This document shows positions 5,135-64,000 of a stretch of DNA of 64,000 nucleotides, in pieces. A program made the position numbers and the translations under genes. Numbering within the stretch: the first letter of the stretch is position 1; each line of letters starts with the position of its first letter. A model generated the notes under the pieces. That model saw only the letters and a list, made by a program, of their open reading frames with translations. It was not told the origin of the DNA and searched no databases. The stretch comes from Selaginella moellendorffii. Its lineage: Eukaryota; Plantae; Lycopodiophyta. The DNA lies in the NCBI RefSeq assembly GCF_000143415.4, contig NW_003314285.1, positions 1,433,412 to 1,497,411 of the forward strand. The letters are read 5' to 3'.

Positions 5135-7083
5135 ATGGGGCAAGCTGGCGACGGTGAGAGAAGCTGTGATCGCCTGCTCCAATCTGGATGCTGGCGTGAC
5201 GGTGTGGGATTTGGCGTCGGGCGTGCCGCTGTCGCACCTCCGATCGTGCGCGGCGCCGCGCAATGCCTTGGCGTGTGTTGGACACCATTTCCTGGCGGCA
5301 TCGCAGATCCACAAGACTGCTAACAATGCCGGCGGCACGATCTTCTTCTGGACCTGGCACAAGGTGAGTGAGAGCAGGAATCGATCGATTTCTTCTTGCC
5401 AAAATCTCGAATTTGATCGGCCGTTTCATTCATTTTCTTTTCCTCTGCGTAGAACCAAGTGGCTTTCAAGAGCTATCCCGTGGAGCCGATCGAGCCTCTA
5501 GCTTGCACTGCCGATGGAGTTTACTTGGCGGGAGGAGGATCGTCGGGAAGAATTTATCTCTGGGAGGTGAGACTTCTCTTAACTTTGTGATTCACACCAT
5601 GACACGGGATTCTGGCAAAGGTCTCGAGTGGAAGATTGCTGCGAGTGTGGGCCGGGCACTACAAAGCCGTCAAGTGCCTCGTCTTCTCCGACGATGATTC
5701 GCTACTCATCTCTGGTGCCGAGGATGGACTCGTCAATGTCTATCCTCTCGTGAGGTAAGTTTGATCCGATCGATCGAGCTTTTCTCCTTGAAGCTTTCTT
5801 CTCATCCTTTCCGGCTTCCTTCCAGGGCCCTGGACAGCATCGAAGAAGCCGGGGAGACCCAGGTACCTTACATGCACAAATGGTCGGATCACACACTTCC
5901 AGTCACTGGATTGCTGGCCGGCTCTGGTGGTTCTAGCGCGATCATCGTCTCGTGCTCACTAGACCACACCTGCAAGGTACGTTTCTTTAGCTCTTCGCAG
6001 CAGCGTGTTAGTTTTTCCAGCTTACCGCGAGAGTTTGTATAGATATGGAGCTTGGCTCTCGGAGCTCTACTCCGGTCGATACTCTTCCCCACTCCCATCA
6101 ATGCTGTTGCACTTGATCCAGGGGAGTACGCGCTCTACGCCGGTGGAGTCGATGGCAGGATTTTTATCACGGCTCTAAACTTCGGTGTTCCATCGGGGTC
6201 TGGCTTGCATTCCGCGGATGGGCTACTCGGTGCTGACGGGATCGGCCACAGGTTGTGTGCTTTCTAAAGTTTTGTTGTTCCAATCCACCCGTCCGACTGC
6301 TTTTGACTAATCTGGAGTTGTTCTTGATAGAGCAGCCGTGCTATTACTGCTCTAGCATTTAGCATGGATGGGGTGTCGCTCGTCTCTGGCTCCGAGGACT
6401 GCACTGTCCGGTTGTGGGACACCGTGAGCCGCCAGGTTCTTCGGACGTTTTCTCACAGCAAAGGTGACCGACCAAAGTTTCTTTTTGTCTCTCCCAACGC
6501 AAAAGTTGCTTTGCTTTGCTGGTTTCTTGCAGGTCCTGTGAGCAGCCTTTTGGTGATACCACGGCCCTCGTCCCTGCTCAGCTCTACAGATCAGCAAGGC
6601 CGTCAAATCAACCGTCGCTTACCAACGCTTCCAGTGGTTCCGTTGAGCAAGTACGTAACAGTCGAGTCAGTGGCACAAGACTTCAAGCCTTGGGAAGGCC
6701 CCCCGGTTGTCCTTCCGTTAACTTGTCCTGCTGATGACGAGGATGCCGAGGGCTACTCTCACAGTATGGTCGCCATGGGAAGACAAATAAGAGAACTAGA
6801 GGTAAGAAAGAGTTTTTTGCCTGGATGAGAGACCGTTGACGGGTTTTGATGACAGCAACAAGGCTCCACGGCAGCGATGCAAATGGAGCTGGAGAGATTG
6901 CGATCGGAGCTCCGGCGGGCTCTTAACAATGGCCAGCAGTGGCAGCAATTGCACCAAGAACTTTACTGTTTCTGCGTGGACGAATTGATGGGTGGGAACC
7001 GGGACAGGGAAGACGACGGAGAGAACAAGGAAAGAACCAAGGGAAGAGCCAGCAAGCTGGGGGACAAGATGCGTGACAAGTAA
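5135..7083 (+). CDS. RID3: WD40 protein ROOT INITIATION DEFECTIVE 3 (Ipi3/WDR18 homolog), multi-exon; start codon out of frame as assembled
   Basis: Exons translate to AVIACSNLDAGVTVWDL..FLAASQ..GTIFFWTWHK|NQVAFKSYPVEPI..GGGSSGRIYLWE|..HYKAVKCLVFSDDDSLLISGAEDG..SLDHTCK..FPTPINAVALDPGE..VSGSEDCTVRLWD, with a C-terminal coiled coil ending at TAA 7083. Confidence 0.88.
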
Positions 7084-7102
7084 GCACAGATTTTGAGGAG
7101 GT

Positions 7103-9643
7103 TTAGGAGGTAGTGGATCGACTCAAACTACTGGTGAGAGACACTGCTTGATTAGAAGTTGTCAATTGTTGCACAGCCTATTATAACCAGACTTTGTGTT
7201 AGAGGACGAAGAACTGAGTTGATATATATACGTACTTGCATCGCAGCTAAGCGTCTTGCCACGCGCTTCTCTTCGTGCTCGCAGCAGCTGACGCGCTCAT
7301 TGTCGATCACAACATCGGCGCGTATGAAACCGTCCACCTCAGTGCACTGGATGTCGAGAGCAAGTCTTTGCTCTCTACACAAGGTCTCGAGCTGCTTGAC
7401 TGGATGGAGCATCACGTTTTCCGGAGTGGCGATTGGTTCTAAGAGCCTTTCATACACCTGAAGATGAGAGAAGTTACAAGAAAGTATACTCCAAAATATA
7501 CGACTTACCTTCCAAACGATATTTGGTTCGTATTCCGAGTCGATAAAAATTGAAGCTGCCAGTGTTTGAATCATGTCTCCAAGCAGCTGAAACAGAGAAT
7601 AAGCAGACAGGATCATTGGAGGACTTGGCTTACTTTTGGTGAGTTTAGTCTGGAAATGCCGAAAGTCGAGCATGCTTTCCCCCTTGCAAGCTCTTCGACA
7701 AGTGATTCTGCGAACTCGGCAATTTGAGGGACGAAGTGGACCTTCTGAAGATAGACGTGAAAGCCATGACGAATACTGACACAGGAATAGTGCTCCTTGT
7801 TGATCGTTGCCTGCTTTAAGGTGTTGAGGCGACCGGCCGACTGGTCCGGGAATGATCTGACCAAGTGCCGTGTCACGAGGTAGTCCAGCACTGCATCGCC
7901 GAGAAACTCTAGACGCCTGAAAGTGAAGTTGTCGTCATGAAAGCTCAGAGCAACTCGCAAGACCTGCTTGTTCCTGAACTGATAGCCGAGTTTCTCTTGT
8001 AGTTCGTTCAAATCATCGTCTGTTAATGATCCGCAGCCTGTGACTTCGAATCTGTGATGATCTTCGGCCCCAGGAGGAAACCGGACTGGTATCTGGAGCC
8101 AGTTCGCTGCTGCCATAGCGGCAGCAAGTTCCCCTTCCAGCACGCATGCCCCCAGAACGGCTTCTACCACGTCCGCCAGTGTCTTCGTCGAGAGCAGTTG
8201 TTCCGGAATCTCTGCCGCTGCTGGTATCATGCCCGGAGATATCCACTTCAGCGGCGAAAACATCTCCGCAAATACATACCGGTACAGATTCCGAGCTAGT
8301 GCCAAACTGGAAAGCGTGCTGTTGCAAACTATATTGTACAGCTCCAGGCCAAGCTCTTCACTGCCCATCGAAGGCGTCGTCGCGTAGACATACGTTCCAG
8401 CGACGATCTTCAGCACGCTGTCTCCTAACAGTTCTAGTGGCTCGTAAGATACATTGAAACAGCATGCTCTGGATGTCAAAGCCTCCAACAGCTAAAACCA
8501 CGTTTCAGTCCTCCAGAAAACAAACTTGCTACGAATTGTACCTTCAAAGCCGAGACCGGGACGTCCATTGCATCGCGCAGTTCTGCGGCTAGCAGTGCCA
8601 TCTCAAGCCTGTACATAACAGAAGGAAGCCGAAGAGCGCCTCTATGCAAGCTTCCCGGTAGTAAAGTTTTCGGAAGTACGCACTCCCTTCTTGAAAAGGT
8701 GACGGCTCTTAGCTTTTTCGTTAGTGTAGCATCTGGAAAGAAGAAACTCAGATCAAATGGTGATAGATAGTTAGAGTTTCATACCATTGTGTTTCGTGAG
8801 ATAGCTCAGTGCCCGGTGCGCCCTCACAGCAACAACTTCGTTCGAGTGTTTCGATAGAACGACGCACGATTTTCCAGCGCAAAGGATCAAGCTGTCAATC
8901 GCGATCTTCTCGTTCGAGGCCTGTGCTTCGGAAGCGATCATCGAGTCAGCGTAATGCAAACCTGAAGAAGTTGCAGCCGCCATCAAGTTCCAATCCACGG
9001 GCAGCTTAAACTCCTCTCTCCTCCATCGCCAAGTCTCTAGCAATGGAACGGCGTAGTAAAGCTTTGGACCTCTCGGTACTCCGATAGCCTCGCGTCTTGG
9101 GAGCGGCCCAGGACGAGATCGAAAAGCCATTTGGTAAATTCTTTGATCTTCACCACCTGGAATGAAAAGAGATCCAAGTAAGAAACTTCACACAAAGAGA
9201 GAGCATACTGTATAGTATACCTCGTCCGAGGGAACCAGCACTTCTCCAATCTCCTCTAGATGGGCACGGACTATGGAGTTTTCTTGGAGGAGCAATTCCA
9301 CTACCATCGCTGCCACGGCCGGATCGACTCTGGTGGGTAGAAGGATTGCAAACTCCGTGGCGTGCCGTTGCAATGGATCCTTGCCTTCCATCACAAGCTC
9401 ATAGCGTATGGCCACGGCATGGAACAAGATCCTGTCCGACGAATCGTCGACCCTTGGACTTGTCTGGACGACACCAGGAATGCCGCGCTCGTAGTGCCGT
9501 GGCGATGCAGTGAGCGGCGATTTGCCATCGCTAGGCGGCACAAGGGGATATTTCTTCTTGCCTGAATCTGGAGCAGCATTGCAATGGGAGATTTCCCCCA
9601 ATGCCGTGACAAGATCGTCGATCTTCTCCTCCAGGGCCTTCAT
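7103..9643 (-). CDS. Helicase-less DCL1-derived RNase III protein (platform, degenerate PAZ, connector, RNase IIIa, RNase IIIb, one dsRBD); 7 exons, 1-nt frameshift in exon 2
   Basis: Exons 9643-9221, 9156-8785, 8732-8542, 8491-7634, 7586-7509, 7457-7236, 7177-7103, all GT-AG. DCL1-like connector LPGSLHRGALRLPSVMYRLEMALLA. RIIIa YEPLELLGDSVLK..KTLADVVEA. RIIIb RLEFLGDAVLD..PKLLGDMIQT. dsRBD HPVKQLETLC..ARRLAA. May be a pseudogene. Confidence 0.8.
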
Positions 9644-10146
9644 CGCTCGCAAGAACGCGAATTTCCAGCTCCGATCGACTCGGAGAGCGAGAGAAAACCA
9701 GAAACCTCGAACAACAGGAGAAGATCCACCGATTCACCTCAGATACCTTCGGCGCTTGCAATCGCCGCCAAGGACGAGACTTTAGAGCTTGGATCGGCTC
9801 CGAGAGGGAAGGAAAGCTGGGCCAGCAACGCGATCGACCTCAAATCTTGCAGCGAGCTCCATGGAGGGAAAAACAATGCTGAAGAACAACCTAGTGATCC
9901 AACGGCTGGGATTAGCCGCGAGGTTTCATGGCTCCATATCCAAAAATTTGTTTCTGTAGAGACGATCTTTGGCTGCCACTCAAGCCTCTAGATTTAAATA
10001 CTATGGGAGAGAAACAAAGCCTCCATCTCGAATCTAGAACAAAGCATCTCTGCGACTAAAAAATATTCTTAGAAAGAACTTTGGCGATGGTAATTTAAGA
10101 TCATAGAAAGTGAAAAATCACGTTAATTCGCCTATGGTTTGTTTGT

Positions 10147-50638: not shown

Positions 50639-53323
50639 TCCCCCTCCCCCTTGTGTCTCTTCCCTGTTCTTCCCTGTTCTTCCTGTTTATTTCCTGTTCT
50701 ACTCTAAAAAACTCTATTCCTTCGTTTAACACCTGGGAATCCGTCAAGACGGTCTAGCTTCCGTGCTCGGGGAGAAGGAAATCCACTCAGCCCTGCTTGA
50801 AATCGATGCTCCTGGCTCCTGGCACAGAATCTCCTGGAAGCAAAATGCCTGTTACTCCAAATTCCAAAGATCTACTCCATGCAAGGGCAATAGAATCAAG
50901 AATGCAGCTCCTGCCACGACCTAAATCCTCCCAGGCACGCCAGGAAAGCGCGAATGCGGCGCAAGGATGCACAGAACACTCGCAAATTCACTCCAAATAC
51001 CGCTTACCTGGCCGCTGGAATCCCCCGAGATGCATCGAGGAGGCCGGATTGGAGCCCAACCCTCCCGCAGCTTTTGCGCGATCGATCTGCCGCTCACACA
51101 ACACCCCTCCAAGGAGCCGCCGTGATGGAGATTATCACTGCCCTAAGCTATGCTCTAGATCCCTTGCTCTCTATGCTCTCGTAGTCGGGGGGGGGGCCGG
51201 CTGGCTATGGCGCTATCACAAAATGTTCTCTCTTTCTCTTGGCTAAAGCAAAATGTAAGCTATTGACGGGAAGGAGTTAATCTCGCCCGTCTATTACATG
51301 CATCCGACCGAGCAGTTTGAGCCACGTCAGAGAGGCCGTCAAGATTTTCAGTGGCCCAGATCCGTCCACGTTATCCATAACCAACCGTCTGATCTAGCCC
51401 AGGGCAGTAAAAGTCTTACGCGGAAAGTGCCAAGTGACGTGTCGCCATCATCTACGTCCGATGGGTATCGAACGAGATGCCGGTGGGCATATTCTGTCCG
51501 CGTCTCACCCAAATGGATGGTGTCACGTGGGTCGTCAGGGAATATTTCTTGTTTGTAGTTAGGATGCGGTTGGCTTCTCGACACGATGTTAAGGTAATGC
51601 CGCCACCTTTGATCCAATTTAGGGTTCTTACTTCTTCCGCCCAAGAACATTGACTGGATCATAATTCCATGCCCAGAAAAGTATTAATTTTTAACAATCG
51701 CTCGTGCATGCATGTGCCAAACGCCCCAGTGTCAACTCCCCTAGTAGAAAAATCCGGAAGTAAAGGTTTTAAATGGTCCCTAAGTCGAACAACGTTTTCT
51801 TCACTCAAAGCTTCATTTTATTGTTCTCAAATTCAAGAATGAATGCATAATCTAGCACTGCTATCTAGAAACCTTGCTTTTGGATTCCTTTTCAAGCAAG
51901 AAGAGCAAGGTGGAAAAAGACAAGGAATTTCTTCTCAAGCTGGTCATTTCACAAGATTTTAAGGGCATAAGTGGTTGTAAACACAATAATGTATGTAATT
52001 ATTCGTATTGTATCATGTCATAAATTATCAGTTCACTTCAAGTTCTTTTTTTTTTTTTGTCTAGTTAATGCAAAACCAAATGCTTTGTCACCAATTAAGA
52101 TTCACACATCCATAAACTTTAAGATCCAGGTGGACGCTGCAAGACCCTCAAAAACATGTATTATTATTCTTTGCCAAGGACTTCAAATCTTACAAGCTTG
52201 CATACATGACAATCTCTTTCTCATACTTGTACTTGAAAGGCTTGCACTATAGTAATACATGCACACCTAGAGGAGTTCATGAATGCCAAGAAAGAATAAA
52301 AGATTTTGGTGCTCTAGCTCCTCAAGCCACATTTTACTACATTATATTTGTTAAAAGCCACTTAATTAGTCATCCACAAAAAAGATAAAAGCCTAGAACA
52401 CATAGACATGTGGGTTTAGCTGAAGTATTGTTTATGAAGTTTATGAAGAATGCAATGAGAAGATGGAGGCATGAGACCATAATGCAATGGATGCAAATTG
52501 AAAATTTTATCACTTTTAGTCCCTTTAGTCTTTAGTTCTAGGTACTCACATCTTTTGCTAATACCAAAGCTACTTTTGCTTTTCCAATTGAACACTGAGA
52601 TATAAAACAATGGTGACTAATACCTCAATGATATTTTATAATTTTACTTTCATAAATGGAAATAATCAGGATCAAAAGAGTGAATTGAAATACTAAGATT
52701 TGAAAAAACGGAAAATAAAAAAACAAAAGAAATTAAACATAGGTAGAAGGAAATGAAATAGAAGTTAAAAACATGGAAGATGTAATAAGGGAGATAATTT
52801 AAAAGTGATCCAACTCTAAAGTTTATACCTTAATAATATAAATATAGAATTGATTTAACTTAGCACTATTGATAATCCTCATCTTGAAACCCATATTTCA
52901 ATCCATTACTAAACTTGATTTTGCTATGTGATGTAACTAAAAATTGTAATATACAATTAAAAACTTAAGCTTGTATTATATAAAATTTTACAAGATTTGC
53001 AAACAAGATTTGTAAACTAGAGCAAGCTAGAATATATGACTTTTCTCCTTTTATTTTGTGATCTAATTACAGTTTTGATGAGATTATAACATTTATTAGG
53101 TTGAGAATAATGACTATGTGCCATCTAAACTTCTAGAACAGTTTAGGCTTCAAAGTATATATTTACAAATTGATAAGGTACAAATTACAATTTATAAGGT
53201 TCTAAATGTACAAATGTAAAGTCTAGATGTATGGCTATAACGTTGTATACTATTATTAGTATAGTAGGATTTTGGTAGCCATTAGATTAGTTTCAATCTG
53301 GACCACTTGCTTTTGTATATAAG

Positions 53324-56300
53324 TGTGAGACACAAATCCTTAAGCCCCAAAGTGGAGCAAAAAGGGTGCCACATGGTAATGGTCAAAGCAGAAGTCTAAT
53401 AAGTGTAACATGTTTGAACCAAAGGCTCGGACTTGGAAAGTTGAGGGTGGGAGTGGAACTCCAAATGAAGTGCTTAAGGGATGAGCACAAAATAGTTGGT
53501 AAATGAGTCTCTAAAAAGGGATATAAAAAGGATTGACACATGATAAGTGCCATGACACATGAAAGTGTCAAGAATGAGTCCAAAAAAAAGTCTAAGAAGG
53601 AGTCTGAGATGGAGTCTGATATAGACCTAAGATGGAGTTTGAGATAGAGTTTGATATGAACCCGAGATGGACCTGATATGGACCCAAGATAGAACCCAAG
53701 ATGGAGTCCGAGATGGACTCGAGATGCAATCCAAGATGGACCTAAAATGGGGTCTAAGATGGACCTAAGATGGAATTTGAGATGGAGTCTAAGATGGACT
53801 AAAGATGGAGTTTGATATGGACCCAAGATGGAGTCCAAGATGGACCCGAAATGGAGTCTGAGGTTGAGGTCGAGAAAGAGACTGAGACTGAGATTGAGAC
53901 TGAGACTGAGTCTGAGACCAAGTCTGAAATTAAGTCCAAGACTGAGTTTGAAATTGAGCCCGAATCCGAATGTGAAAGCCCAAAGTGATTGTCTCCCAAA
54001 CCCTGGGAGGTTTGGTGAGCTCCAAAAGTATAGTAAGGGGAAAACTCTAGGAAAGCTAGTTTAGTCAAAGAAGGTTAGTGGGACCATACCTATGTGTTGG
54101 GTGATGATATAACTATTGAGGAGTCCAATACTAGAGTGAATATGAACAAACAAGTGGGGTAACTTAGTGAAGTGTTCAAGAGTTGACTCTAGCTTTAGGA
54201 TATTAAATAGTTGATGCTCCCAATCTAAGTATGGGTGGCACTACGTATTTGGATACCTAGCATGGCTCAATAGAACCTTGCTCTAGCCACTTGGCTAGGG
54301 CACATAAAAGTGGAAAGTGGGGAGAGTACCCATAAGGTCCGTGTAAGGCCATGATGTTTCGAAATATCATCCCAAAGTCCCAAACTGTGGAAAGGAAGAC
54401 GAGTAGTCCTCTAATGTAGTAACCAAGGATACAATCACAAGGTGAGGAAGTTTTAGAGGACAATAGGACTTAGTGGTTGAGTCTTTGGGTCACCCAATGG
54501 CAATGTTGGCGAGCATGGTCATGGATGAAGAGGGACTTGGCAGGGACGGAAGAAGGGACATTGAGGAAGGGTGTTACCCATGTCTTTAGGCATCCTAAGG
54601 GTGCTAAGGTGTGGTCAAAGGATGACCACTCATGGATAGATGACTCAGTCTTTGAGAGATGGGATGGTGATGCAAATGGTCTTGGAATACCAATATGACA
54701 AAGGTGAATGAGCATGGCTTTAACATAATAGGCTGATATGTCAGTGGTACCTTTGAATATTGGTTATGGGGTCAAATATGTGGAGCACTTGGACCAAGTG
54801 CAAAGGCTAAGTGGCATAAATGCCATTCACAGGGCTAACATGTCCCCTAATCCTAAATAGAACTTATGAAAATTGTTAATGAGACTCTTCCAATTAATAT
54901 ATACATTTTTGTATTCCATTTTTATTCCATGCAGTCAAAGAGTGTTGTCAAGGGTGGTTAAAGTAAATATATACACAAGTTCTACAATATCTTGATGAAG
55001 CGTTAACCACAACATTCCCAACTTAATCTACTTTAACATATTTGGCTTACACGAAGTAAGAGGCTTTAAAGACATGTAAAAAACTCATGCTAACACCCAA
55101 CATCACCTCAAGAATGATACATAAAGTGATTGAACCAATGGTATATATCATCCTTAAGATTCCTATGGAAGAACTTTAGCCAAACACGAGGATTAATAAC
55201 AAAAGTAGAAGGAGTTGTATTAGGTGCTATGAATGGTGCTATCAACTAAGTCTAATTTTTCAATTGCAACTACATAACATCAATCAATTATACCAAATGT
55301 TGCTCTAAAGTCAAAGAAGGAGGAAGTTGCCTCTAGCTTAAAGTTTAGCTTAAAGTAAAGCTTAAATATTACAAAGTTAAGTGATATTTAGATAATACAG
55401 AAGTTAAATTTAAACAAAAAGCACAAATCCAAGTACTTCTCAAAAACAATCAAAGTTGCCTCTCATTTCTATTAATGTAAGTGTATGGAATATAAAAATA
55501 AATTATAAGAATATACATATCAATTAAATATGAATGGCACAACATTATGAAACATCACCTATTGCATATACTTAAACTCCACTTCATGTGAGAGATGATC
55601 TAATTCTAATGGAAGAAGGGACAACTCAAAAAATGATTTATAAGGGTTTAAATATAAAGAGAAAAGGTCCATTAACAAGAGTGCCATTGTGCTTTTGGTT
55701 TAAATTTAACTTCTGCATTATTTAAATCTCACTTAACTTTATAATATTTCAATTTCTTCTTTTTTACTTTTATATGAGTGTAAGACACAAATTCTAAACC
55801 CCAAAGTGGAGCAAAAAGGGTGCCACATAGTAGTGGTCAAAATGGAAGTTTAACAAACATAACATGTTTGGACCAAAAGCTCTAACTTGGAAAGTCGAGA
55901 GCGGGAATAGAACTCTAAAAAAAGTGCTCGAGAAATAAGCATGAAGCAATTGGTGAATGAGTCTCTAAAAAAAAAAGGAACATGAGAAGAGCTAACACAT
56001 GGCAAGTGTCATGACACATGGAAGTGTTAGGAACAAATCCGAGAAGGAGTTTGAGATGGAGTCCAAGATGGAGTCCAAGATAGACCTAAGATAGACCCAA
56101 GATGGAGTCCAAGATGGAATCCGAGATAAACCCAAGATGGACCCAAGATGGAGTTTGAGATGGAGTCTGGTATGGATTTGAGATGAAGTCCAAGATGGAG
56201 TCCGATATGGACCCAAGATGGAGTCCGAAATGGATCCAAGATGGAATCCGAGATGGAGTCTGATATGGACCCGAAATGGACTTGAGATGGAGTCCAAGAT

Positions 56301-57130
56301 GGATCTAAGATGAAGTCTGAGGTCGAGTCCGAGATGGATATGAGATGGAGTCTGAGACCGAGACCGAGACCGAGACAAAGTTTGAGACCAAGTCCGAGAC
56401 CAAGACCGAGACCGAGATCAAGTCCGAGTCTGAGTCCGTGTATGAGTCTAAGTCACGATTCCGATGAGGGATTTTAGATCTGATGACTCATCTCCCAAAA
56501 CCCTAGAGGATTTAGTGAGCTCTAAAAATATAGTAAGAGGAGGACTTCAGTAGAGCCAATTTAGCCAAGAAAGGCTAATGTGACCAAGGAAGGCTATACC
56601 CACTTGTTGGGTGATGATATAACCATTGAGGAGTCTAAGATTAGAATGAATACAGATAGACACTATGAATGAAATGATCAAAATGAATGAGTTAATATTG
56701 AAATGAATTACAAACAAAGTGCTCGAAAAATGAGCACGAAGTGATCGATGAATGAGTTTCTAGAAAGGGACACAAGAAGGACTAACACATGGCAAGTGTC
56801 AGGACTGAGTCTAAGATGGAATCTGAGATGGAGTCTGAAATGGAGTCCAAGAAGGAGTTCGAGATGGAGTCCAAGATGGAGCCTAAAGTCAAGTCCAAGA
56901 TGGAGTTCAAGATGGAGCCTAAAGTCTCCAAGATGGAGATTGAGACCGAGTTTGAAATCAAGGGTAAGACCAAAATCGAGACTGAGAGCAAGTCCGAGTC
57001 CAAATACTAATGCAGGTCAATGGTGAAAGCCTAAAGAGATTTTCCCCTAGGGGGGGAGGGCTACAAAGGGTTCCAAAAGTATAGTAGGGAAAGTGTGGGG
57101 GTTGGACTCTATAGTGGAATCAGTTTAGTG
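53324..57130 (+). repeat. Three copies of an LTR-like module with degenerate 12-bp tandem repeats (GATGGAGTCCAA) and 6-bp GAGACC repeats
   Basis: Modules at about 53324-54140, 55779-56660 and 56715-57130 share flanks, with arrays at about 53600-53960, 56040-56440 and 56805-57000. Unrelated sequence lies between the modules. Confidence 0.8.
55364..55749. repeat. About 63-bp inverted repeat pair (foldback/MITE-like)
   Basis: 55364-55426 is the near-perfect reverse complement of 55687-55749. Confidence 0.8.
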
Positions 57131-60100
57131 GGGGGGTGGGTTGTTGGGGGTTTCAAATGTATAGTAGAGATAGTGGGTAGGTCAAGCATGGTTGACAAAC
57201 CTAAGACATAATATAGCTCTTGTTTACGTGTCTGTCCTTGTTTTGTGTCTAGCTTGGGTATAAACCCAAGTTCCACACCATGCTAGCTGGTGGAGTACCC
57301 ATATCCTCGTGTTATGCCACCAGTATACTGAAATAGCACTAGACTCCGTTTGGCTCTATTTTGTATGCTAGTCTTAGCATTGGGATGGTGAAAGCTCTAG
57401 GACTGTTGCAACATTGCTCAGTTCTTTTGTCTCTTCGCTCCTTGGGTTAAACACTCAAGAGTCACTTTATGCTTTAGTTCTTGGCTGTAAGCTTAGGAGT
57501 TTGGTTTTGTACCTTCATTCAAAGGCCCAAGGTTCTAAAACTTGGGTTCCACTCCATTGTCCTTGGGGATATGTGGCATATGGCACGTGGCATATGACAC
57601 ATGGTATATAAAGGGTTTAAGTTTTGCTTCGTGGTTATCCTATAGTAAATTACTATACGATAAAAGGTGAAAACCATATGTGCTACATTGGGTATCAGAG
57701 AATGAGTTTCAGTGAATACTATCCAATGAGATTGGGCAACTAGTCTCATTGCATATGCAAAGATGAGAGTGATGATCTAAGTGGGAATACATTTGGGTGC
57801 TAAGACTTTGTATTTGTTCCTTGAGTATGGATTTTAATTACCTTTTTGTACCATATTATGTGAGCTTGCACTTGGACTCATATGATGGATTGAGATGCAC
57901 CATTTACACGAGTTTAAGCTTGGGCTTGTGAGTGAGGCACATTAACAACTCAAGGTTACACTTTGAGTTGGCAGGATTAATATTAGCCTATTGGGGGGTT
58001 CCATGAGTTGTTCTAGTTGTTCCATGAGTTATTTCATGTATTGTGGGTTGAAATAAAACTCCCTTAGGTTTGCTATGGGTGGCAAATAAGCTGGTCCATA
58101 GCTGTTTAGCATGGCATTAGCAGATCCTTCCTAGGCATGATTATGAGTGGATCAATCAAGACTATAGGGATTAGTTTATTGGTTCAAGTACTCATTGCCA
58201 TGCTCTCTCATAAAAATTTTTTAGACTGAACTTAGGCAATGCTAATGCAAACTTAAGGTTTAGTCAAGTTAAGTTCAAAAATAAAGTTACTAGGGACGAA
58301 GGATCAAATACATAAATCATCTTCTCTTTTTTAAAAGATGATTTGTAACAAAGTATGACTCATTGCTTATGTTTACATTATGCAATCAAGAATCCCTATC
58401 TTGATGCATGTTGGTTATAATAGTCTTGCAATGGTGAGTTGTGGGATGGATAGCGGTGAAGCGCTAAACCATGTTATTGAGGCTTGTTATTGAAGAATTG
58501 GGTTACAATACTCAATTTTTTTCTTGAAAACTTTGCTATTGCTCCTTGAGTAGCTTGGTGTTGGATTAGTTTTGAGTTTGGTCAGAAAGAGAGTGGCATG
58601 AATTTATCTATGTTATGAACAAAGTTGATGGTATTGAGTGTTGTAAATTTTTATCAGTGGGGTGTGGCATTTATATTGCATTTTGTCGAATTGAGGTGGC
58701 ACTTAATACTCATATAAATCTTTGTAATAGTGACATGGGTGTTGCTCATGGTATTACTCAATTAATTATCAAGTTATTATGATTTTTATATTATATCCAT
58801 GTGATAGTGAGCAATGTGTTTACAAAATTGCTTGGTTAAACAATGATTAACCCAAAATAGTTGATAGTGAAGCTAGTCTACTTGCAAGTAATAACATTAA
58901 AGTAGTTTTGACTTAGTTCATAATAATGGTCCATTATGCTAAGCTTGAGTAGGTACTTTGGTTCTTGAGAGTTTACCTATTAAGGTTTTGAAAAGGGTTA
59001 TAACATTCACTTTCTATGGCTTGTTAGTTTATTTGTTAGCCTTAGAGTAAATAGTGAAAGTGTGAAGTTAAGGCATTGATATTGGCAACACTTGTGTTAA
59101 TGGAAGTGGTATTGTTGATTCGAATGATGTGGAGTTTTTCCTTAGAGCTTGATTTTCTATATCATTTTTTTTGTTAGTGTTTTAACTTCACATTAGATCT
59201 TGAAGGTGGTTAAAGAAGAGTGTTAATGCAATATAGATATCCATAGATATGGTCTTTGTGATCAAACCTTGGATGTTCATTTTGCATTTTGTGGATATCA
59301 ATGTTGGGCATTAGAAATATGAGCATGATGTTTGATAGTAAAACATATTGTTGGGTTATAAGAATTAGTGTTGAGGTGAAATTATGTGAAGTTGTTAATA
59401 ATAGAAAGTTGGTTGAGTCTTGAAAGTTTGTATTCCTAGACTGAGAGTTATTTTTTCTTTAGAATAGAAAATTTTCTATAAATTTTTTTAGACTTTTCCA
59501 ATAGCTAATTTATTGATCATTTTGCTTGAAAACCATTTCATTTTCGAAAGCCATTACAAACTAATGAAAGGGTTGGAGTTAATTTTGGTTCATTTAGACA
59601 TTAGTATATAGTTTGTATGATGCAGCTTAAAAGGGTTACTTACTGTTGGGGCTAAAGCAATTGAGTTAAATAAAGTCTAGAGTTAGTATCAAAAAGTAGC
59701 CATTGTGCCTTTCTTTATTAATGTTATATTATATGGAAGATTGCACCTTGTATTTCATAAACTCTATATGAGTAGTGAACTCTCACTAATTTTGACTTAA
59801 TCTTGGTAGCTTTGCATTTTAGCTGAGGATAGTGATGTCCAACTTAGTTGTTTGTGGTTGAAGTGTTAATTCTTGTATTATAGCTTTGTTTATCAAGAAG
59901 TTATATACCAATATGAGTTTATCTCATAGTCTTCACTTTAGTTTCAATTAAGTGTTGATCATGTATATTTAGCCTCTTCCAGGCATGCTCAAAGCTATTA
60001 GCTAGACGTGTTTGTGAGCTTATTGTGGTTCAATTAAATTTGGGTGGTCATTTGGTTTGTGTTTGTTATATTCCTATATTTAGTATATTGAGCATACCTT

Positions 60101-63100
60101 TCCGTTGGACAAATATATTACTTCATGATGTGAGTTTAGTGTTTAGGTCTTATGAAGGCAAGTTAAAGAGTGATTGTTAATTTCTTTACTGCTAATGATT
60201 GCTTGTAGACTTCATCAAGAACTTTTAACACTTGCTTCACTCAATGATGATTTAGTAGTGATGAGCTTGTGTTACTGGATGGTGTTGCAAAGGATTGTGT
60301 CATTAGCTTATATAGTTTTTCCATATTAGCGTGTCGACTCTACCTTTGTCAATATCATTTGGTTGCATTTAGTCTATGGTGTTGGATTTCATTAAGTCTT
60401 GGATGTAATGATTTATTTCTTAATGAAGTGTTATCTGTAATTGAGTTTTATTGAAGGTTTAAATTTCAGATACTAAGTAAGGTATCTTTGACTTTGGTTA
60501 GCTTAGTAGTTATAGAACTTTGAGTGATGATTCACTTTTGCTTTCTTTTAGCTTTATTTTGGTATTGATGGCATTGAAGTGAGTCTTGTTGTTGGCATTA
60601 TTGATATTAAGATTTGAGTGAAATGTGATATCTCTTTGTAAGATTGATAATAAGTTTTATTCGTTTTGATATGGTTAGTGTTGATGATTTGGTTATAGCT
60701 TTACATTATTAGTATTCATGCATTTGCTAGTTAGCAACTATGTTGGCATTCAAATGAGTTGAGTAGCAAGTTGAGTTAATTATGTTCTAGACAAGATTAT
60801 TTAATAGGGGTTGAGCTTTGGTTTTTCCTTGAAACATGATTTAATCATGGAGTATGCTAACTTTATAAAAGGAAAAATTAGTGATCAATATTAGAATTTT
60901 TAAATCTTTGTTAGATTTGAGTTGGGATATATCGATCATTGATGATTCTTCTTGTGTTTATTATGAAGTAACTTACATCTTGTTATAAAAGATGGATTCA
61001 TGGAGGATCAGTTTAATAATTACTTGCTAAACATAGCTTCATTATATTTGGTTTTTGGATTGATGCAAATATACTTTTTATTAACTTTGGCATTATAAAG
61101 TTTGGCTTCTGGATGTGTTAAGGAGGATGTTATGGTTGTATTTTGATTTCTTCTTTTCCATTAAAGTTAATTTATGCCAGACTTATAATTAGTATTAGGC
61201 GAAACTTGGCCATAAGCTTTTTTAAGATTTTGGTTTTTTTGAGTTTTCATATTCATTGTTCTATTTATTAAGAGTTGTTGGGAAAGGCATTTTGGCTCAT
61301 TAGTTTCAATGTTGAAGTTAGTATTTGCATCTAGCAATCATTAGTGATGATTGACTATCATTTATGACAGTTGATTATCTTTGTTAAAGGTTTTACTTAA
61401 TTATTGTTGTTATATAATGATTTGTCATTTTTTGGATGGTGGATTCTTTCTTTGACAATGATTATGCATCTCTCTTTTGATGGGATGATTAATAATATTT
61501 CATGATAGTTAGTTGTTCTCTTTGATGGTTTGTGGTTTTTCACATTACCATAAATTCTTTGTAGTTTACTTTAGATTGGTCTTTTGGGTTTGAAATATTA
61601 ATAGAATGTTGTTAATGCTTCCTTGAGAAACTCTAGTTCTTTGGTATTATTGATTGAGATCTATTTAGATTAGCTCATATGATAGCTGACATGAACAAAT
61701 GTTTGTTTTATTAATTATTACTATAGTTGATTCTAATAGATTGGATATTATTTCCTTTATACAATACATTTGTGAGTATTTTACTGAAAAAGTTGATGAT
61801 ACTTTATGTTCTTTGAGCTGTCTATTATAAGTTGTTTGGCACACTATCTACAATCTTTGGTAGTTAGGTTTTATTATTAAGGTTTTTTGATGATTTACTT
61901 GCTATTGAATTTTATTGGATGGTTAATTCTATGACTTTAACCTTTAAAAATCTTGGTGGTTCTTATACTCTAATACTGGTTTATCAAATGATAACTTATT
62001 TGGAATACTTTTGTGTTTTAATCTAAGATTTATTTACTGATAATTAAGTCTCTTAGATATCATTGTCTCTGACTTTGATATTGTTCATCTATTGACCTTT
62101 GGGTTTGGGCTAGTATAGGCAGATTAACTTCGGCATTTTGTATGTATGGTGAAATCTTTAGTCATAAGGTAGCTATTATTGATTGGTCACATCACCCACC
62201 TCTCTCTCAATGTTTCTTATTTCGTTAAAAAGGGCATGATTGTATAAATAACTTTAACTATCTATATACAATAGTTTATCTAAATCTTATTGACAGGTTT
62301 AGTTTTTTTGTTCATGAGGGTTGGGGCTTCTAGCTTCTCTCTCTATGCTACCAATAGGCAGGGGTATATCACACTTTTGTAAGTTGGATGACACCCAAAG
62401 TAACAAGGGTGGTAAACTTTGTTAGTTATTTCTTTGTCGGTGATAGCCAAAAGGTGTTTGAGTTGGTAGTGCATTTTCATTAGAGAAAGAGGTTACTTTA
62501 ACTCATTTAAGTTAGTGCATTTCTCACAAGATATCTTTAAACGTGCATTTGGATATGTTAACGATTGTGATGATGCCTTCTAACAATTGCATTGTCTTTG
62601 TCAAGGTTTATTTAAGTGTAAATATGGTAAACTTTTTCTAAAGTTGTTTCCTTAGTAGTGTTCTAGACTAGAGTATGCATCAACGAGGATGTCGATTTTT
62701 CCTAAGAGGGGGAGATTGCAAATATAACTTTGGGTATCAAAAGTTATTTGTTGACTAATACTTTTGAATATTCTTTTTTTACTGCCATGATGATAGAAGG
62801 TTAGTATTGTTGGACCCTTTATCAGTCCCTCTTGTACTAGTGGAGTTAACTAAGCATTTCAAGTGTATTTAAACTGGATGAGCATAAGGATGAAATTCTT
62901 ACATGTTATTAGCTAAGCATATTTAGCTTAGTTAGGAGTTCCCATCTCGTTATATCTTGCACTGGCTAGTGACAAGAACCCACATATTGAGATTAATCCC
63001 TCAATATCGCTAAATGATAGTTTATTTGGTTCCAAATATATAGTAGGGATAGTGGGTAGGTGGCCAACCAACTTGAGGCATAGTCTAACTTTGGTTTACA

Positions 63101-63567
63101 TGTTTGTCCTTGTTCTGTGTTTGACTTAGGTTTAAGCCCAAGTTCCACACCATGCTAGCTAGTGAAGTACCCATATCCCATATCCTCGCATTAAGCTACC
63201 AATATGCTGAAATAGTGCCAAACTCTATTGGCTCCATTTCACGTGTTGGTCCTGGCATTGGGATGCTGGAAGCTCTAAGATTGTTCCAACATTGCTTGAT
63301 GCTCCTAAACCCTAAACCCTTTGCTCCTTGGGCTAAATGTTCAAGAGTCACTTCATGCTTCAATTCTTTCACTCTTTGGTTACAAGCTTCGGAATTTAGC
63401 TCTGTACTTTCATTTAGTGGCCTAAGGCCCTAAAACTCAAGTTCCACTCTATTGTCCTTAGGGACATGTGGCATATGACATATGGTATATAGAGGGTTTA
63501 AGTTTCACTCATGGTTATCCTATAATAAATTACAATAGGATAAAGGATAAAAACCACATATACTACA
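57130..63567 (+). mobile_element. Decayed copia-like LTR retroelement, copy 2 (5' LTR truncated)
   Basis: LTR end GCTACA at 57687, then PBS GGTATCAGAG. PPT AAGAGGGGGA at about 62704-62713. 3' LTR at about 62714-63567 with an internal deletion. The internal region is collinear with copy 1 and lacks both Cassandra insertions. Confidence 0.85.
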
Positions 63568-63569
63568 AG

Positions 63570-64000
63570 AAAGCTTTTGTAGTCACTATTCATAAAAGGT
63601 GGTAATAGTCATACAATAAATTAGTTTTCTTCTCCAGCCTTTTTAACACCAAGAGGTTATATGAAACCACAGAATTCCAACCGAACCATCACCCAATACA
63701 ATCATGGCATCTTCCATGGTTAACACCATGAAACTCGTCCACCAGATTCATGATGACTTAAGTCACATTCCAAACTTTGGAGGCACTTCATTTAACATAT
63801 AAGAGCTCTCAACTTTATGACACAAAGCAAAGTTCTAGGTTTTTGCTTGAGGTCGCAACAATCCACCTCAATGCATCAAGATAACATCCAGCTCTAAAGG
63901 ATGATATAACTAGCCTTTAGCCTCTCTTCATCCACCTATTTAATAGCTCCTAATATCACTACCAACTCTTCTCACGATGACATCTTTTCTCTCTTCTTTG
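63570..64000 (-). mobile_element. Possible retroelement pol remnant
   Basis: Decayed LVDEFHGVNHG segment, reminiscent of an integrase zinc finger; many stops. Confidence 0.25.

Follow-up and report, generated by a model that had tools for sequence, protein, structure and literature searches.

A stretch of 64,000 nucleotides from the genome of the spikemoss Selaginella moellendorffii (NCBI RefSeq assembly GCF_000143415.4, contig NW_003314285.1, positions 1,433,412 to 1,497,411 of the forward strand), here called the window, carries on its minus strand a short Dicer-like (DCL) gene made of seven exons which are separated by short GT..AG introns, as read from the sequence and from the joints found in RNA. 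Here we analyzed the structure, transcription and family of this gene along with the catalytic residues of its two RNase III domains, RIIIa and RIIIb. The last catalytic Glu of RIIIb is replaced by Gln, and the same Glu is missing from all 11 lineages that were found of the clade to which the gene belongs. The gene codes for a helicase-less protein of the clade of MINIMAL DICER-LIKE (mDCL) in which RIIIa alone is complete, and it is our view that this protein probably acts as a one-strand cutter of double-stranded RNA (dsRNA). All positions are given in the numbering of the window.

The gene model was built from RNA joints of public runs placed on 7050-9750. Two sets of RNA-like contigs (X1, and X4 from another study), one set of DNA contigs (X10) and one set of raw RNA-seq reads (X22) were used for this task, and the contigs of X1, X4 and X10 together carry more than one allele. 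All six joints are present in X1 and X4, and four of the six are also found in single raw reads of X22. The first mates of X22 lie on the plus strand across the gene, which matches minus-strand RNA in the usual stranded libraries. The coding span comes to 739 codons if a one-base frameshift in exon 2 is read through with X. The positions of all features and the basis on which each was assigned are collected in the following table.

Table. Features of the mDCL-clade gene and its catalytic motifs in the window.
Feature	Position	Strand	Basis or remark
Coding span, helicase-less Dicer-like (mDCL-clade) gene	7103..9643	-	ATG 9643-9641, stop 7105-7103
Introns	9155-9218, 8731-8782, 8492-8541, 7587-7633, 7456-7506, 7177-7234	-	RNA joints
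Exon 1, N-terminal platform-like region	9219..9643	-	joint 9154/9219 = 64-nucleotide GT..AG intron 9155-9218
Exon 2, platform and PAZ remnant	8783..9154	-	alignment with relatives, Pfam
Frameshift site, GG in the window and GGG in X1	9068..9069	-	X1 contig, depth 36
Premature TAG, codon 181 in the window's own frame	9037..9039	-	translation
Exon 3, connector helix (LHRGALRLPSVMYRLEMALLAAELRD)	8542..8730	-	RNA joints, alignment
Exon 4, entire RNase IIIa and first two thirds of RNase IIIb	7634..8491	-	Pfam, PDB matches
RIIIa signature YEPLELLGD, intact	8420..8446	-	counterparts of E. coli E38, E41, D45
RIIIa second motif LADVVEAV, intact	8156..8179	-	counterparts of E. coli D114, E117
RIIIb signature RRLEFLGD	7895..7918	-	counterparts of E. 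coli E41, D45 kept
Exon 5, RIIIb second motif LLGDMIQTLAASIFIDS	7507..7586	-	RNA joints, PDB matches, sequence
RIIIb second motif LLGDMIQTL	7560-7586	-	sequence
CAA = Gln622, in place of the last catalytic Glu	7566..7568	-	sequence, register to Dicers
Exon 6, C-terminal alpha-beta3-alpha domain (dsRBD fold)	7235..7455	-	AF2 model of Diphasiastrum homologue, alignment
Exon 7, variable Ser/Thr-rich tail and stop codon	7103..7176	-	RNA joints

The nuclease module is recognized in exon 4 by the Pfam model Ribonuclease_3, which matches in two stretches (E 5e-31). The matches of this exon in PDB are to DCL3, DCL1 and DCL4, with 30-32% identity to DCL1 and DCL3 over the shared module. No helicase was matched by Pfam, and neither a helicase nor DUF283, which is the Dicer dimerisation domain of canonical DCLs, lies upstream of 9643. 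The connector helix of exon 3 is the most conserved part of the whole clade, with 68% mean identity. For the C-terminal domain the Pfam dsrm model is weak and is found in one relative only (P0158).

Exon 5 starts with CTG CTT GGA GAC ATG ATT CAA, which is translated as L L G D M I Q, and the splice that brings ..NSPK in front of LLGDMIQ (intron 7587-7633, GT..AG) is supported by two RNA-like contigs and by one raw RNA-seq read. When the 26 residues of exon 5 alone were compared with PDB, three matches only were obtained, all of them ungapped and each at the second motif of RIIIb, namely mouse Dicer (MGDIFES), fly Dcr-1 (LGDVFES) and Arabidopsis DCL1 (LGDIVES, within residues 1691-1715). The alignment of exon 4 to Arabidopsis DCL1 runs up to residue 1690 (..PKV). 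From the ungapped register and the end of exon 4 it follows that Gln622 stands at the place of E1696 of Arabidopsis DCL1, E1813 of human DICER1 and E117 of E. coli RNase III. Of the 146 representatives of canonical Dicers in the alignment of HMMER hits, 143 carry Glu in this column. The counterparts of E. coli E41, D45, D114 and E117 are all acidic in RIIIa (ELLGD and ADVVE), and RIIIb is incomplete, as it keeps acidic residues for E41, D45 and D114 and has Gln for E117.

The CAA codon is the same in all contigs of X1, X4 and X10, and the seven differences that a DNA contig of X10 shows within 7537-8050 fall outside it. RNA editing at the Gln codon was ruled out, as all reads and contigs are alike there. 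The first-pass annotation, made from the letters of the window, had reported an intact RIIIa (LELLGD, ADVVE), a kept LEFLGD in RIIIb and a Glu-to-Gln change at 7566-7568 (GDMIQ). Direct reading of the sequence bears out the acidic residues, the change itself is real with its register confirmed by the ungapped PDB alignments, and no Glu turned up on another allele in the contigs of the three runs.

The open reading frame of exon 4 (291 residues) is 97% identical to the S. moellendorffii protein EFJ13346.1, and the next closest protein is one of 805 residues from Diphasiastrum with 48% identity. In a HMMER scan a set of short proteins ranks above all canonical DCLs, consisting of the Diphasiastrum protein, proteins of Riccia fluitans (720 residues) and Ceratopteris (906 residues), a truncated Ginkgo model and sequences from three further assemblies. 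Marchantia paleacea, Calypogeia fissa, Riccia sorocarpa and the moss Sphagnum fallax (P0197) were added by further searches. Searching with the Diphasiastrum protein or with the family alignment returned mostly canonical DCL2 and fungal Dicers and gained one member, and a search limited to the C-terminal region gave four more members, Sphagnum among them. Two plant assemblies of Logan, L001 (SRR33208241) and L002 (SRR33208280), also contain mDCL-clade genes, which lie at L001:1300-4420 and L002:650-1830; the introns of the L001 gene are short, as in Selaginella.

In the tree nine lineages form one clade with full support (100/100) and a long stem branch of 0.72 changes per site. The order inside the clade is that of the species tree, with liverworts, moss, lycophytes (where the window gene stands beside Diphasiastrum) and ferns. 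The clade is placed outside DCL2/3/4 (99/97) and adjoins DCL1-type sequences with moderate support (82/73). The best pairwise scores had pointed to a derivative of DCL3, and this origin was ruled out by the placement outside DCL2/3/4.

The mDCL of the moss Physcomitrium patens is said to have been introduced by Coruh et al. in 2015. Proteins of this family have been described as lacking the helicase and the Dicer dimerisation domain (PMC10721683). They cluster near DCL1, and a truncated DCL of S. moellendorffii clusters beside them (PMC5144951). MpMDCL of Marchantia polymorpha is most similar to the moss PpmDCL, and members of the family also occur in vascular plants (PMC13738684). That the clade of the window gene is this published mDCL family is well supported, in an indirect way. 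S. moellendorffii also has a second helicase-less Dicer-like protein of 608 residues (P0043, XP_002989272.2) which falls inside the DCL1 clade. It has Asn for Asp in RIIIa, Gln for Glu in RIIIb and two good dsRBD matches; it is the sole other Gln among the 146 canonical representatives, and its Diphasiastrum counterpart is P0181.

The loss of the RIIIb Glu was then followed across the clade. At the counterpart of E117 in RIIIb, Glu is found in none of the 11 clade lineages; eight have Gln (Selaginella, Diphasiastrum, M. paleacea, R. fluitans, Calypogeia, Sphagnum, L001 and L002), R. sorocarpa has Lys, and Ceratopteris and P0007 have Pro. The Gln of L001 and of L002 was read from the genomic contigs, in the exon following the truncated gene calls. 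The ten homologous lineages thus agree with the window gene in lacking Glu, most of them with Gln as well, and conservation of Gln across homologues was one of the checks put forward with the first-pass annotation. A Gln codon becomes a Pro or a Lys codon by one base change each, and a Glu codon needs two changes to become Pro, so that a Gln ancestor fits the distribution. The replacement therefore appears, from these sequences, to be a trait of the family and not a peculiarity of the window gene, and the Glu has apparently been absent since the origin of the clade in early land plants.

The remaining carboxylates of RIIIb were lost piecemeal elsewhere in the clade, E41 being changed to V, G, S, A or D, D45 to N (in Sphagnum) and D114 to A or V. 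The five carboxylates of RIIIa are invariant in all nine of the named or full-length lineages, which include bryophytes, lycophytes and ferns. As whole domains the two are about equally conserved, with a mean identity of 44% for RIIIb and 49% for RIIIa. A RIIIa that is invariant, together with a RIIIb that drifts as a site yet is kept as a fold, is what would be expected if RIIIb stopped cutting early and RIIIa was kept as an enzyme.

The structure of the module was predicted with AF2 on the Diphasiastrum protein (P0002), the full-length homologue closest to the window protein and 48-49% identical to the window protein, using residues 343-805 and an alignment of 50 rows. The model has a mean predicted local distance difference test score (pLDDT) of 89.5 and a predicted template modelling score (pTM) of 0.89, and ends in an alpha-beta-beta-beta-alpha domain at the residues that align to exon 6. 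Over the whole module its template modelling (TM) score is 0.81 to Arabidopsis DCL3 in the dicing complex (30% identity) and 0.74 to mammalian Dicer in the dicing state. The model speaks for a chain in which RIIIa pairs with RIIIb and a dsRBD comes after them, as the predicted arrangement of an mDCL-type protein.

We propose that the two RNase III domains would pair within one chain, as usual, with the RIIIa half alone providing the full set of metal-binding carboxylates. The RIIIb half, with its Gln since the origin of the clade, would serve as a structural partner which holds the RNA. Hydrolysis would take place only on the strand facing RIIIa, which in canonical Dicers is the strand of the 3' arm; Zhang et al. 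reportedly assigned in 2004 the cutting of the 3' arm to RIIIa and that of the 5' arm to RIIIb. The duplex would come out nicked and not diced, except where a different nuclease attacks the second strand. According to Sun and Nicholson, in work of 2001, the E117 position of E. coli is said to need strictly the side chain of Glu. The claim of the first-pass annotation that this position is a known site of inactivation with binding kept holds up against two mutants of the same kind. Aquifex RNase III with E110Q was crystallised with dsRNA bound and uncut (PDB 1yz9, from the title), and E1813Q is a somatic hotspot of DICER1 RIIIb, where hotspot mutations deplete the microRNAs of the 5p strand (PMC11180504).

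Two features upstream of the nuclease domains, the deletion of the PAZ core and a one-base frameshift, go beyond the first-pass annotation. Past the joint of exons 1 and 2 the reading of the window that matches its homologues, VVKIKEFTKWLFDLVLGRSQDARLSEYRE, and its likewise matching continuation, PKLYYAVPLLE..VDWNLM, lie in different frames, and the homologue in L001 has ..DDGPKGYF.. within a single frame. The X1 contig has one extra base behind 9068 which restores ..SEYREGPKLYY.., and the X4 contig (depth 10) has the GG form of the window. Both forms are thus present in RNA, and the window represents the broken one. The allele of the window, whose frame ends at codon 181 and cannot yield the RNase III part when read from the normal start, probably makes no nuclease, and the intact allele seen in RNA has an open frame of 739 codons with all six introns correctly spliced. 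Downstream of the frameshift about 560 codons follow in the window's copy without a further stop, which indicates that the lesion is young. A slip of the assembly is a less likely, though conceivable, sole cause of the frameshift; against this, the same GG form is found in the RNA-like X4 contig, which comes from a separate study. A splice route around the frameshift was also considered and rejected, as no pair of donor and acceptor restores the frame without removing the conserved VVKIKEFTKWLFDLVLGR segment; the RNA contigs have no extra joint inside exon 2. Allelic divergence is clustered at 8947-9068, where X1 differs by six substitutions and the one-base indel in about 105 bases, and DNA contigs of X10 are unplaced over the same interval at the 93% threshold.

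Several points weigh against a one-strand cutter. We infer the inactive RIIIb, the active RIIIa and the one-strand outcome, all three, from sources other than enzymology; the Gln could keep a trace of activity or a neighbouring residue could compensate for it, and two molecules that paired through their RIIIa domains could cut both strands. The identification as mDCL is drawn from Sphagnum and liverwort orthologues and from descriptions in the literature, and not from the P. patens sequence. In Selaginella itself the frameshift of the window copy is a sign of relaxed constraint, and expression is low, at a depth of about 1-2 reads with 12% of the X22 run read. The alignment further shows that about 75 residues of the PAZ core, which are kept in all other full-length members, are gone from the window protein. 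Pfam finds no PAZ in window exons 2 and 3 and finds it in P0002, P0158, P0197 and P0008, and L001 retains the core as well. With this core deleted, the Selaginella protein would lack the usual pocket for measuring from a 3' end. The listed allelic differences comprise 19 nonsynonymous and 13 synonymous ones, where 3.2:1 is expected under neutrality (15 more are outside this count), which gives a ratio of nonsynonymous to synonymous polymorphism (pN/pS) of about 0.46, so the constraint on the Selaginella gene is relaxed yet not absent.

The stop at codon 181 with the same broken form in an RNA contig, the lost PAZ core, the low expression and this pN/pS value are also what a decaying gene could leave. 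The Selaginella copy would then be on its way to a pseudogene and its Gln would be without present function there, whatever its role in other plants. We regard such decay as unlikely, though it has to be reckoned with, because the other allele is open and correctly spliced, the lesion is young, the RIIIa carboxylates are all retained and pN/pS is below one. A poorer prospect is a protein in which neither site cuts in vivo, and which would sequester dsRNA, pass it on, or compete with another DCL and so regulate it. The dead RIIIb, the lack of PAZ and helicase in the Selaginella protein and the binding of dsRNA by a catalytically dead RNase III mutant, as in the Aquifex title, all suit such a decoy, as does the altered EGxLT motif of RIIIa. 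The first-pass annotation had noted that SEELGLEL replaces EGxLT..R and had doubted the activity of RIIIa on this ground. The reading of the motif stands, and the doubt is weakened, since the five carboxylates are invariant and every clade member has the acidic residue of [DE]xL, one place along, where canonical Dicers have EGxL. The invariance of the RIIIa carboxylates in nine lineages, while those of RIIIb drift, is the asymmetry that selection for one working site predicts, and it makes a decoy rather improbable. A competitor of DCL1, which had also been suggested from the letters of the window, finds no support, and moss genetics ties mDCL to the DCL3 pathway of heterochromatic small interfering RNA (siRNA) and to the accumulation of 23-nucleotide siRNA (PMC10721683, PMC5144951).

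It is also conceivable that a full dicer is restored by dimerisation, in which mDCL, paired with a second copy of itself or with a different RNase III protein, would bring two live sites to the duplex and cut both strands, and RIIIb would be a scaffold. Class 1 RNase III and Dcr1 of budding yeast act as homodimers, which counts for this explanation. So does the published moss genetics, in which mDCL is reported to need DCL3 to give the full siRNA set (PMC5144951). The AF2 model nevertheless puts RIIIa against RIIIb in one chain, as in DCL3, and the fold of RIIIb and the connector are well conserved, as would be expected with an intramolecular pair retained, so that we give dimerisation very little credit. 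The one-strand cutter with RIIIa as its working site remains our preferred explanation.

A wider proposal can be offered tentatively, and it may well turn out wrong, that the mDCL family as a whole is a natural and ancient dsRNA 'nickase', which cuts one strand of duplexes of the Pol IV/RDR type and leaves the other to DCL3 or another nuclease. If true, it would explain why the moss mDCL is needed for one size class of siRNA (23 nucleotides), and the Gln would have stayed in 8 of the 11 lineages because the uncut strand has to be held by a pocket that resembles a catalytic one. A family that has apparently gone without one live site ever since land plants arose, and has guarded the other, would, if so, be a natural one-strand cutter. 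The proposal gives a testable mechanism for the unexplained effect of moss mDCL on a single siRNA size class. In the spikemoss the family has been stripped further, by loss of the PAZ core, and the frameshifted and intact alleles, both transcribed, offer a natural loss-of-function contrast.

Some details of the gene and its surroundings were also recorded. The joint of exons 2 and 3 in both RNA-like contigs lies at 8783 to 8730 and reads AT..AT, not GT..AG. It equals a canonical splice 8784/8733 together with G for A at 8732, where exon 3 begins (Asp to Gly); the alleles may differ here, or the splice may be an odd one. In the C-terminal tail one transcript contig misses 12 bases at 7121, which is an in-frame loss of four codons, and two more nonsynonymous differences lie nearby (7149 and 7168). 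The tail is variable. Exon 7 (7103-7176) is overlapped by the 3' end of a convergent WD40 gene of the plus strand, whose open reading frame ends at about 7083. RNA-seq reads of the opposite strand at 7050-7230, with a depth dropping from 19 to 3, run from the WD40 gene into exon 7 as a natural antisense 3' overlap. The next gene upstream on the minus strand is an Alg9-like mannosyltransferase (10.7-12.3 kb), followed on the same strand by a PLAC8-family gene (12.5-12.7 kb) and an F-box/kelch gene (13.6-14.8 kb). The AT-rich blocks at 16000-40000 and 52000-64000 are probably repeats or transposons; their G+C is 33-43%, that of the genic parts about 50%, and GC skew is strong in them at 28-32 kb and 56-60 kb.

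By definition a Dicer cuts both strands with two live RNase III sites, and the inactivation of one site is a classic trick of the laboratory as well as a mechanism of human tumours. What was already known here is the mDCL gene family, and a truncated Selaginella member is in print (PMC5144951). The loss of the catalytic Glu of RIIIb is unmentioned in the searchable mDCL literature, which describes the domain content and the 23-nucleotide siRNA phenotype and does not include the founding paper. With mDCL of P. patens and MpMDCL the window protein is compared through proteins of the same architecture from M. paleacea, Riccia, Calypogeia, Sphagnum, Diphasiastrum and Ceratopteris, with which it groups at 100/100; mDCL as described has PAZ, whereas the Selaginella protein is without the PAZ core. 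Canonical DCL1 and DCL3 (PDB 7eld, 7vg2) have the same module of connector, RIIIa, RIIIb and dsRBD, but the window protein is without helicase, DUF283 and PAZ core and has Gln where DCL1 has E1696.

Drosha resembles the Selaginella protein in having neither helicase nor PAZ and in combining two RNase III domains with one dsRBD, and differs from it in that both of its sites are active. Closest kinship with Drosha was ruled out, as the Diphasiastrum model has a TM score of 0.53-0.57 to it (17-19% identity) against 0.81 to DCL3, and the phylogeny places the protein among plant DCLs. An analogy of mechanism is found in trypanosomes, where the editing endonucleases KREN1-3 are paired with the degenerate RNase III partners KREPB4/5, and the one live site is held to explain the nicking of a single strand. 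The trypanosome enzymes differ in being intermolecular heterodimers of single-domain proteins with an unrelated lineage and substrate, and their kinship to the window protein is limited to the RNase III fold. RIIIb-type mutants keep binding RNA, as those of E. coli E117 are understood to do. DICER1 E1813Q and Aquifex E110Q have the same substitution at the same residue as the window protein, and in Dicer the cutting of the 5p strand alone is lost (PMC11180504). Such engineered or disease mutants, those of E. coli E117 included, are of laboratory or somatic origin, whereas the state of the family described here was fixed by evolution.

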